The notes under the pieces were generated by a model, which was given only the letters and a program-made list of their open reading frames with translations, was not told where the DNA came from and did no database searches. From the NCBI GenBank assembly GCA_002104905.1, contig MCFE01000429.1, forward strand, positions 1-64,000: a DNA stretch of 64,000 nt. The letters run 5' to 3'. The stretch comes from Basidiobolus meristosporus CBS 931.73. Lineage: Eukaryota; Fungi; Basidiobolomycota. Position numbers and translations under genes: made by a program. This document shows positions 59,501 through 62,386 of the stretch, piece after piece (within the stretch, counting starts at the first letter, position 1; every line of letters begins with the position of its first letter).

Positions 59501-62386
59501 TGTCAATCCTCTCAAGTAAGAGTTTTCTACGAATCCCTTACTTTCCGGTCCATAATCATCCTTGGTGAAATGAGGCAAGGTTCTGAATTTGAATCCGAAA
59601 GGAATACGCTTTCCTTCCACGTTCTGTTGGCCGACACAAGCAGACATTTGGGAGATATTAATGAAAGAACCTTTGGATCCCGAGACTACCATCTGTTTGA
59701 CGTTGTTTTCTTCCTTTAAACTCTTCTCAGCACTTCGACCGGAGTGATCACGAGCTCTATTCAACTCACGATTTACTTTGTTTTCGAAGGTTTCCCGAAT
59801 TGTCATACCAGGTGCGCATTCGAGTTTGTCCTGCTGAGCGGTCAGAATAATTTCACTTACACGCTGCTTTGCGGAATTGATAGTTTCGGTAATGTGCTCC
59901 GTTGTTTTGTCATCAGCAATGGTATCACCAATACCAATACTGAACCCATTTTGCAAGAGCCAATAATTTACTACAGCTTGGGCACCACTGAAGAATTTCT
60001 TGGCTACTTCTGGACCATGTTCGTTCATTGCAACGTGAACCCAACCTCCATTGGAAGCACCCACAGTTTTCTTGCATACGATTCCACTGATTAGCTCGCC
60101 ATTTTCAACAACTACTTTGGTATCTCCAGGAGAAATATCGCTCTTTTCATCATCCGGATGCGCAGAGTGGTAGGTGATACAGTTGATTCCTTTCGGGATA
60201 ATCATGGAAATCAACTGCTTTCCAGTCCAGAGTGGTTGCGGCTTGAGAATGGCCGGTGTAGGGATTACACCATCCCAATCATGTACCCACATAAGAATAT
60301 TCATCACCAAGGACTTTTCTAAAAAGCAATCACGCTTTGTGAATTTACGGACACCACATAAAGTATCTTGGACAATTCCCATGACCGGCTTGTTAGATTG
60401 TGGAGAAATAATTTGCTTGGGCACCATGCAGATTTCCTTGATTTCAGCTTTGGTTTCTTCAGATTGAGGCACATGCATATTCATTTCGTCACCATCGAAA
60501 TCGGCATTGTAGGGAGAAGTTACCGACAAGTTTAGACGGAATGTGGAGTAGGGCATAACTCGAACTTTATGTCCCATCATGGACATTTTATGCAGTGAAG
60601 GCTGACGGTTGAAAATAACAACATCACCATTGTTGAGATGGCGTTCTACCCTGTAGCCATATTGAAGTGGAATGTCACCAGCACGCTTGTGGTATCTCAA
60701 ATCAATACGTTCACCAGTGTCACGAATTACATACTTGGCTCCAGGGTGCTCGTTTGGTCCATTACGTACCAACTCTTGCATCCTTTCAATATTATAAGGA
60801 GTAACCATCTCTGGGAATGTCAAATTTCGGGCAATACTACGCGGAACACCAACTTCATCAATTGACAAGTTAGGATCACCGGTAATAACTGTACGAGCAG
60901 AGAAATCCACACGCTTTCCCATTAAATTGCCACGAAGACGGCCTTCTTTACCCTTCAATCTGGCACGAATGGATTTCAACTAACAATCACAAAAATGTGA
61001 GAAAATTGAGGGAAAAAAATTCTCAAAAAGAATTTCATGTACCGGTCTCCCTGATTTTTGTAAGGCTTGAGGCTGACCAGCTATATCGTTATCCATATAT
61101 GTGGCTACATGAAACTATTGACAATTATAAAAGTTTAGCAAAGGGCTACGGGAAGAACAGCTTATGAAATTCATTGTACTTGGAGGAGTTGCTCAAATTC
61201 ATCAATTACGTGAACAGGGGCGCCTTCCGTTTCGCAACGTTTAACATTAACGTTGGCCTTGAGGATATCGGCAAGTTTATGTGTTAAATCGTCTTCTCCT
61301 CTGCTAGAACCGTCCATTTGAATACTTGGGCGCACTGGCGGAGGGGGGACCGGAAGAACGGTGATAATCATCCAGTCAGGGCGAGCAAACTCGGCAGAGA
61401 GACCCATTGATTCCAAATCCTCGTCGGTAATTCTTTTCAGGATTTGGTGTACTTGTGATGGTGTTAGTGGTTGTTTACCCTCAGGCATGGCACCCTAAGA
61501 ATTTTTAATTAGTAAACGACCACCGTATAACATCCTACTCTATTGATATTACCTCACTTCCACCTTTGAATTCGGCGAATAGCTTGAGTCCATCCTTTCG
61601 AATCACAGGTTGTCTGTGACCACAACCACCATGACCTTTACGTCGAATTATAGGATCTCCATTCTCATCAACGTCGTCTTGATTAGCTGTAGCAGGGTCG
61701 GTTTCTTCTACACTATCACAGATCATTTTGGATTTGCATACATCCCAAACTGCCTTTAAACGAGCTTTACGGTCTTTGATGTGCTTAGCTCTGGAAAATT
61801 TAGGGTTGGTCTAAAAATTTGAAGACAAAGTTTAAAGTGAATACAAAGGAGAGAGATAAAAAAATGATGTATTACATCATCTCCTTTGAGCTTCGAACAG
61901 AAGAAGCAGACGCACTCCAATATTTTTTTAACTTTGATAATGAAACCTTATCATTCACAGAAAAAAGTTAATACGTTGGCCTAGTTTGAAATAAATAATG
62001 CGTTCTACTCACCAACGTGATATACGGGCTTTGCAAGCTCGATATGGCCAAAATGGCCAGGGCACTCTGCCATCCCCTCTCCGCAAGTTTGGCATTTGTA
62101 GTTTCGATCAACAGTTCCCATTCTAGGATCAAGAAGGCCGCCAGCTTTAGGCTTTTGAACACCTTCTTCCATGGTCTCTGGGTATTCGATCTTGGCAACA
62201 GACATGGCTTTCTATTTTAAAAAGTTAAGGAATAGATTCTCTTATCACATCTGTAAAGATTAAGCGCGGATTACGACACAAAATAACAAGAAAGGATACG
62301 ATCTCTTCGGGAGACAAGATACCAAACTGGACAGTCTTTACTCGCCGCAAAGGCGCGGACGAATAAGCGAAGCCGTAAGGATTCAT
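56597..62386 (-). CDS. RPB1: RNA polymerase II largest subunit, about 7 coding exons
   Basis: [14 protein letters not shown], Zn-binding [24 protein letters not shown], active-site [27 protein letters not shown] heptads. Confidence 0.99.
56693..57286 (-). repeat. RPB1 CTD, about 28 heptad units
   Basis: 16 consecutive YSPTSPS lie between two YSPTSPR units whose Tyr codons are 357 bp apart, with degenerate units at both ends. Confidence 0.95.
62212..62299 (-). other. U12-type (minor spliceosome) GT-AG intron in RPB1
   Basis: 5' splice site GTATCCTTT. Branch sequence TTCCTTAAC (62232-62224) ends about 12 nt from the 3' AG. Phase 0, EEI|KAM. Confidence 0.93.

Follow-up and report, generated by a model that had tools for sequence, protein, structure and literature searches.

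The RPB1 gene and its exon-intron structure

The window, by which we mean the whole 64-kb stretch of Basidiobolus meristosporus CBS 931.73 DNA analyzed here, carries on its minus strand the gene for the largest subunit of RNA polymerase II, RPB1. The exons of this gene were searched one by one, and the frames at the junctions were checked by script rather than through a joined spliced model. The resulting features are as follows.

62386-62300, minus strand: RPB1 exon 1, with the ATG at 62386-62384 and 29 codons, collinear with the N-termini of the Umbelopsis, Mucor and other RPB1 proteins
62299-62212, minus strand: RPB1 intron 1, predicted U12-type GT-AG intron of 88 nt in phase 0, placed from the sequence and the reading frame
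62299-62291, minus strand: 5' splice site of intron 1, GTATCCTTT, 9/9 against the U12 consensus RTATCCTTT
62232-62224, minus strand: branch-point sequence of intron 1, TTCCTTAAC, 9/9 against TTCCTTRAY
62213-62212, minus strand: 3' splice site AG of intron 1 (ATAG/AAA)
62211-62013, minus strand: RPB1 exon 2, ending ...HVG, with Pfam PF04997 RNA_pol_Rpb1_1
62012-60980, minus strand: RPB1 exons 3-6 and introns 2-6, placed by mapping the public protein P0160 exactly onto the window
62012-61947, minus strand: RPB1 intron 2, U2-type, donor GTGAGT
61875-61811, minus strand: RPB1 intron 3, U2-type, donor GTAATA
61552-61495, minus strand: RPB1 intron 4, U2-type, donor GTAATA
61179-61115, minus strand: RPB1 intron 5, U2-type, donor GTACAA
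61042-60980, minus strand: RPB1 intron 6, U2-type, donor GTACAT
60979-56597, minus strand: RPB1 exon 7, 1460 codons (4.4 kb), with the YSPTSPS repeats of the CTD and the stop codon

The identification of the gene as RPB1, which had been made in the first-pass annotation from the sequence alone, was borne out by the match of exon 2 to the RNA_pol_Rpb1_1 profile (E=1.5e-26, profile positions 18-83) and by the CTD heptads in the large exon. The same annotation had placed the intron of interest at the first coding junction, after only about 29 codons, and this position was confirmed by the extent of exon 1. It had also described the other introns as U2-type, which holds for introns 2-6 of RPB1, each 58-66 nt long and with the donors listed above. 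Just downstream of RPB1, a minus-strand ORF at 55752-56030 encodes a hydrophobic product that resembles Pmp3/UPF0057 by eye.

Splice signals of intron 1

On the minus strand the junction reads GAA GAG ATC/GTATCCTTTCTTG...ATTCCTTAACTTTTTAAAATAG/AAA GCC ATG TCT GTT GCC AAG, the coding sequence resuming at 62211. Excision of intron 1 yields a protein junction SPEEI/... that aligns without gaps to the RPB1 sequences of Umbelopsis, Mucor and others; an alternative AG located 4 nt downstream of the acceptor would break the RPB1 frame, and retention of the intron leads to a stop after 24 extra codons. The earlier claim that both the donor and the branch site match the U12 consensus exactly stands, with nine of nine positions in each. 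The predicted branch adenosine is 62225, 13 nt away from the final G of the terminal AG, the spacing used here for U12-type introns being about 10-15 nt between the branch A and the 3' splice site. The spacer from the branch site to the AG is CTTTTTAAAATAG. This spacer contains no pyrimidine tract, in agreement with the statement made at first pass that a long tract is absent from intron 1. Overall, the intron combines a U12 donor, a U12 branch site, a short distance between branch and AG without a pyrimidine tract, and GT-AG ends that restore the reading frame.

Taken by itself, RTATCCTT has four occurrences in the window against 4.3 expected, which is the level of chance. When a donor and a branch site at the right spacing were considered together with open frames on both sides, intron 1 was the only credible pair in the 64 kb, and the probability of finding both motifs by chance is roughly 2e-9 per intron. 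A search of the window at the gathering thresholds gave no Rfam match, and the window is hence without a minor snRNA gene.

A number of look-alike pairs in the window were rejected. The pair 4036 to 3000 spans 1 kb between GT...AC ends; the pairs 32859 to 32366 and 32859 to 32151 lie where there is no minus-strand coding ORF; and the candidates near 40xxx and 10xxx/14xxx span 345-1150 nt with weak motifs. The pair 28726 to 28354 would remove 124 codons, with its 3' end inside the ORF of a two-AAA-domain ATPase; this pair in the ATPase gene, ATATCTTCG...CCTTGA...AC, mimics an in-frame AT-AC U12 intron and is a false positive because of the 124-codon loss. The ATPase gene itself occupies 26606-28726 on the minus strand, has two Pfam AAA domains, AAA_lid_3 and Vps4_C, and is Cdc48-like by eye.

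Conservation of the intron 1 signals in an RPB1 paralogue

A second RPB1 gene of B. meristosporus is present on contig MCFE01000020.1 (public model P0013, locus L001, 5806-11100). The two copies share 89% identity at the protein level and 76% at the DNA level, and all six intron positions are common to both. The paralogue carries a matching exon 1 of 29 codons that differs from the window copy by nine synonymous and two non-synonymous codon changes; judged from this sequence comparison, exon 1 is held by protein-level constraint. Intron 1 of the paralogue occupies the identical site, is 69 nt long and reads GTATCTTTTT...TTCCTTAAC, with the AG 12 nt past the branch A. Its donor, GTATCTTTT, agrees with the consensus RTATCCTTT at eight of nine positions. 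Between the two genes the branch site is thus kept at 9/9 positions and the donor at 8/9, with 6/7 kept at donor positions +3 to +9.

The background against which these signals have been kept is one of extensive divergence. At 4-fold degenerate sites 58.6% of positions differ between the RPB1 copies (JC distance 1.14), and the six pairs of paralogous introns show only about 55-58% identity in optimized alignments, that is, they are saturated. The chance of keeping both U12 signals under neutrality is about 8e-6. Since the intron interiors are saturated and the branch site and donor are kept, selection has acted on the U12 signals, and this conservation is the strongest evidence available that these signals are functional. 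The U12 signals are all that the introns of the two copies have kept since their ancient divergence, which is direct evolutionary evidence for the use of these signals.

Regarding the surroundings of the two genes, a gene for a 314-aa WD40 protein lies upstream of both RPB1 copies, which suggests a block duplication. A UCR_hinge gene (cytochrome bc1 hinge protein) was found a few kb from RPB1 both at the paralogue locus (L001, 15586-16014) and in Nematostella (L005, 1-623); its proximity in both loci is possibly a coincidence.

Public models of RPB1 genes

The public protein P0160, a 'partial' RPB1 of B. meristosporus CBS 931.73, is 100% identical to the large exon of the gene in the window. 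The gene of P0160 is placed on contig MCFE01000429.1 (GCA_002104905.1), where its coordinates are identical to those of the window. The 1023-aa model begins with MAECPGHF at position 62073, within exon 2, and runs to 58688, and a separate public model of 261 aa begins 3 nt after this end; the RPB1 gene is thereby split across two models. A single unbroken exon, the 1460-codon exon 7, spans the split and continues through the CTD to 56597. The public model lacks both exon 1 and intron 1 of the window gene, and the model of the paralogue, P0013, likewise starts inside exon 2, at MEEGG. P0013 also excises a 341-nt 'intron' (10676-11016 in the coordinates of L001) that consists of CTD-repeat coding sequence and probably reflects an annotation error.

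Among the public RPB1 models of fungi, many have as their first residue the methionine that directly follows the intron 1 junction. The exon of about 29 codons is intact upstream of the shortened models in Cetraspora, Paraglomus, Lichtheimia, Paraphysoderma and Coemansia (L002, L003, L004, L007 and L008), and several more shortened models in the match list look alike. Loss of the short first exon therefore appears to be a systematic, recurrent error in the annotation of RPB1. Were the public annotation taken as correct, translation would begin in exon 2, and exon 1 with its intron would be an untranslated leader or a relic. The internal methionines at which both P0160 and P0013 begin, and the availability of a methionine right after the junction (KAMSV), fit such a start. 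We regard it as very improbable nonetheless, as exon 1 codes for the universally conserved N-terminus of Rpb1, as its divergence between the paralogues is mostly synonymous (nine changes against two), and as the equivalent short first exon precedes the shortened models of the five genera named above.

Because intron 1 lies outside the public models of both RPB1 copies, catalogues of minor introns that are based on annotation could not include it. No minor intron of RPB1 came up in the searchable literature. Both RPB1 models of the reference genome are incomplete at the 5' end, and intron 1 is missing from the annotation-based catalogues of minor introns.

The same intron position in other organisms

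The first-pass annotation had proposed to compare the orthologous position of RPB1 in other fungi, animals and plants. An intron was found there in all three groups. Among the named genomes, the phase-0 site is occupied by a U2-type intron in nine of nine: Cetraspora, Paraglomus, Lichtheimia, Nematostella, Chara, Paraphysoderma, Coemansia, Lingula and Spizellomyces. The donor at the site is GTAAGT, GTGAGT or GTAGGT in six of these nine, including GTAAGT in Coemansia, the nearest of the sampled Zoopagomycota, and it is GTATGT or GTATGC in the Mucoromycota, including Glomeromycotina. Since the site is shared by plants, animals and fungi, the position of the intron predates their split.

A scan of metagenomes with an alignment of exon 2 gave 80 loci, 57 of which allowed exact placement of both exon ends. 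An intron is present at the site in 34 of the mapped loci and missing from 23, and all 34 introns are U2-type. Going by their N-terminal sequences, these 34 loci seem to include basidiomycete-like, Mortierella-like, land-plant-like and animal-like genes. Neither an RTATCYT donor nor a CCTTRA motif within the last 45 nt was found in any of the 43 other introns at this site (9 named and 34 metagenomic). The comparison therefore returned U2-type introns in 43 of 43 cases and U12 signals only in the two Basidiobolus copies.

Splicing class of intron 1

We conclude that RPB1 intron 1 is very probably a genuine U12-type GT-AG intron, and that its U12 identity most likely arose as a derived state within the Basidiobolus lineage. 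The minor-spliceosome machinery of the host is known from the literature. B. meristosporus is published as the fungus with the highest density of minor introns, 249 introns or 0.554% (PMC10639083); a second survey counted 237 and reported the U11, U12 and U6atac genes and, when the threshold was relaxed, a divergent U4atac (PMC11347168). The headline reading of the first-pass annotation, that a working minor spliceosome exists in this organism, is sound, and so is its statement that minor introns are kept in some early-diverging fungi, of which the host, with 237-249 published introns, is one (PMC10639083; PMC11347168); the minor spliceosome of B. meristosporus is already published, and this part is not new. 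The further suggestion that supply of Pol II is 'gated' by intron 1 is speculation. In Rhizophagus, the only fungus for which intron retention has been measured, minor-intron splicing is without the proliferation-linked pattern of animals (PMC10639083).

The sequences show the signals, their spacing, the frame, the selective conservation of the signals and the U2-type state elsewhere; from these we infer that the minor spliceosome is used at intron 1 and which way its type has switched. The steps that we propose for intron 1 follow the accepted scheme of minor splicing. The U11/U12 di-snRNP would bind the donor and the branch site together, bulging A62225; U4atac/U6atac.U5 would join next, and U6atac would displace U11 at the donor, after which the exons would be joined at 62300^62211. 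Exact excision would be needed for the conserved 29-residue N-terminus to be fused in frame to the remainder of Rpb1, and retention of the intron would lead to an early stop codon. Both RPB1 paralogues would rely on the same kind of intron.

An intron with these signals could in principle be real and yet be removed by the major, U2-dependent spliceosome, the U12-like motifs being incidental or partly used. Intron 1 has GT-AG ends, its TTAAC agrees with the loose U2 branch consensus yUnAy, and the orthologous intron is U2-type everywhere else examined; moreover, the other RPB1 introns include degenerate donors (GTAATA, GTACAA, GTACAT), so that GTATCC might be tolerated as well. What the paralogues have kept, however, exceeds the needs of U2 splicing, namely all nine positions of TTCCTTAAC and six of the seven donor positions from +3 to +9 between otherwise saturated introns. 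Intron 1 is also devoid of a pyrimidine tract, and with TC at exon positions -2/-1 and TCC at donor positions +4 to +6 almost no pairing with U1 is left. Removal by the major spliceosome is on this evidence quite improbable, and splicing of intron 1 by the minor spliceosome is the reading that we carry forward.

Origin of the U12 state

The outgroups are U2-type at the site, and the U12 state is absent outside the focal lineage among the 9 named genomes and 34 metagenome loci. A single switch from U2 to U12 before the split of the paralogues accounts for the data. We consider it likely that such a conversion took place at the conserved RPB1 site in the Basidiobolus lineage before the paralogues diverged, and that its product was then held by selection. 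The direction of the switch rests on parsimony, in a sample whose nearest member among the Zoopagomycota is Coemansia. A series of donors connected by single substitutions can be laid out from GTATGTTTT in Lichtheimia through GTATCTTTT in the paralogue to GTATCCTTT in the window. Phase 0 is typical for major introns and atypical for minor ones. The phase of the intron, this donor series and the low density of minor introns reconstructed for the ancestor of Zoopagomycota (PMC10639083) all support a derived origin.

The opposite polarity would trace the U12 type of the intron back to the ancestor shared by plants, animals and fungi; Basidiobolus alone would have kept it, and all other lineages would have converted the intron to U2 independently. 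Only a few mutations turn a minor intron into a major one, a change that is accepted as the direction of conversion and considered much easier than the opposite one (PMC10639083), and the GTATGT donors of the fungal relatives are only one or two substitutions from GTATCT or GTATCC. Such a history would nevertheless require at least about six independent conversions (in plants, animals, chytrids, Blastocladiomycota, Kickxellomycotina, and Mucoromycota including Glomeromycotina), and none of these lineages has deleted the intron or kept its U12 type, even though several retain many minor introns. Phase 0 would be unusual for an old minor intron, and the low density in ancestral Zoopagomycota set against the high density in Basidiobolus implies gains (PMC10639083). 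We therefore judge an ancestral U12 state to be unlikely, and less likely than a single U2-to-U12 switch.

If the U2-to-U12 switch is true, RPB1 intron 1 would be a clean, datable instance of the 'forbidden' major-to-minor direction, which is commonly taken to be nearly absent, and it would suggest that some of the record complement of minor introns in Basidiobolus came about through conversion. Fungal introns that are short, with GTATGT donors and a branch point near the acceptor, would then have been pre-adapted for the switch. Conversion as such is not a new principle, given that 15-20% of human minor introns are inferred to be major in origin (PMC11347168); the RPB1 case would be a clear example of it and is a well-controlled candidate, with 43 other genes that are U2-type at the site.

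Comparison with known introns

A close counterpart of intron 1 is the orthologous U2-type first coding intron of RPB1/POLR2A-type genes, which occupies the identical phase-0 position between SP(E/D)E(I/L/T) and (K/R)xMSV. In fungi this intron is also short (48-312 nt), with several GTATGT donors. The difference lies in the signals, as the orthologous introns have U2-type donors (GTAAGT, GTATGT, GTGCGT and similar) in 43 of 43 cases and the Basidiobolus copies have U12 signals.

With the catalogued U12 GT-AG introns of B. meristosporus, intron 1 shares the donor RTATCCTTT, the branch sequence TTCCTTAAC at 10-15 nt from the 3' splice site, the GT-AG ends, the absence of a pyrimidine tract and a host that possesses U11, U12 and U6atac. 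Unlike them, it falls outside the public models of both RPB1 copies. It also departs from minor introns in general by its phase 0, against which minor introns are biased.

The human introns inferred to have undergone major-to-minor conversion likewise present a minor intron where the outgroups have a major one (PMC11347168). The RPB1 intron differs from them in that its site belongs to a core housekeeping gene and has been conserved among plants, animals and fungi, its putative U12 state has become fixed in both of the long-separated paralogues, and a one-step donor series is apparent.
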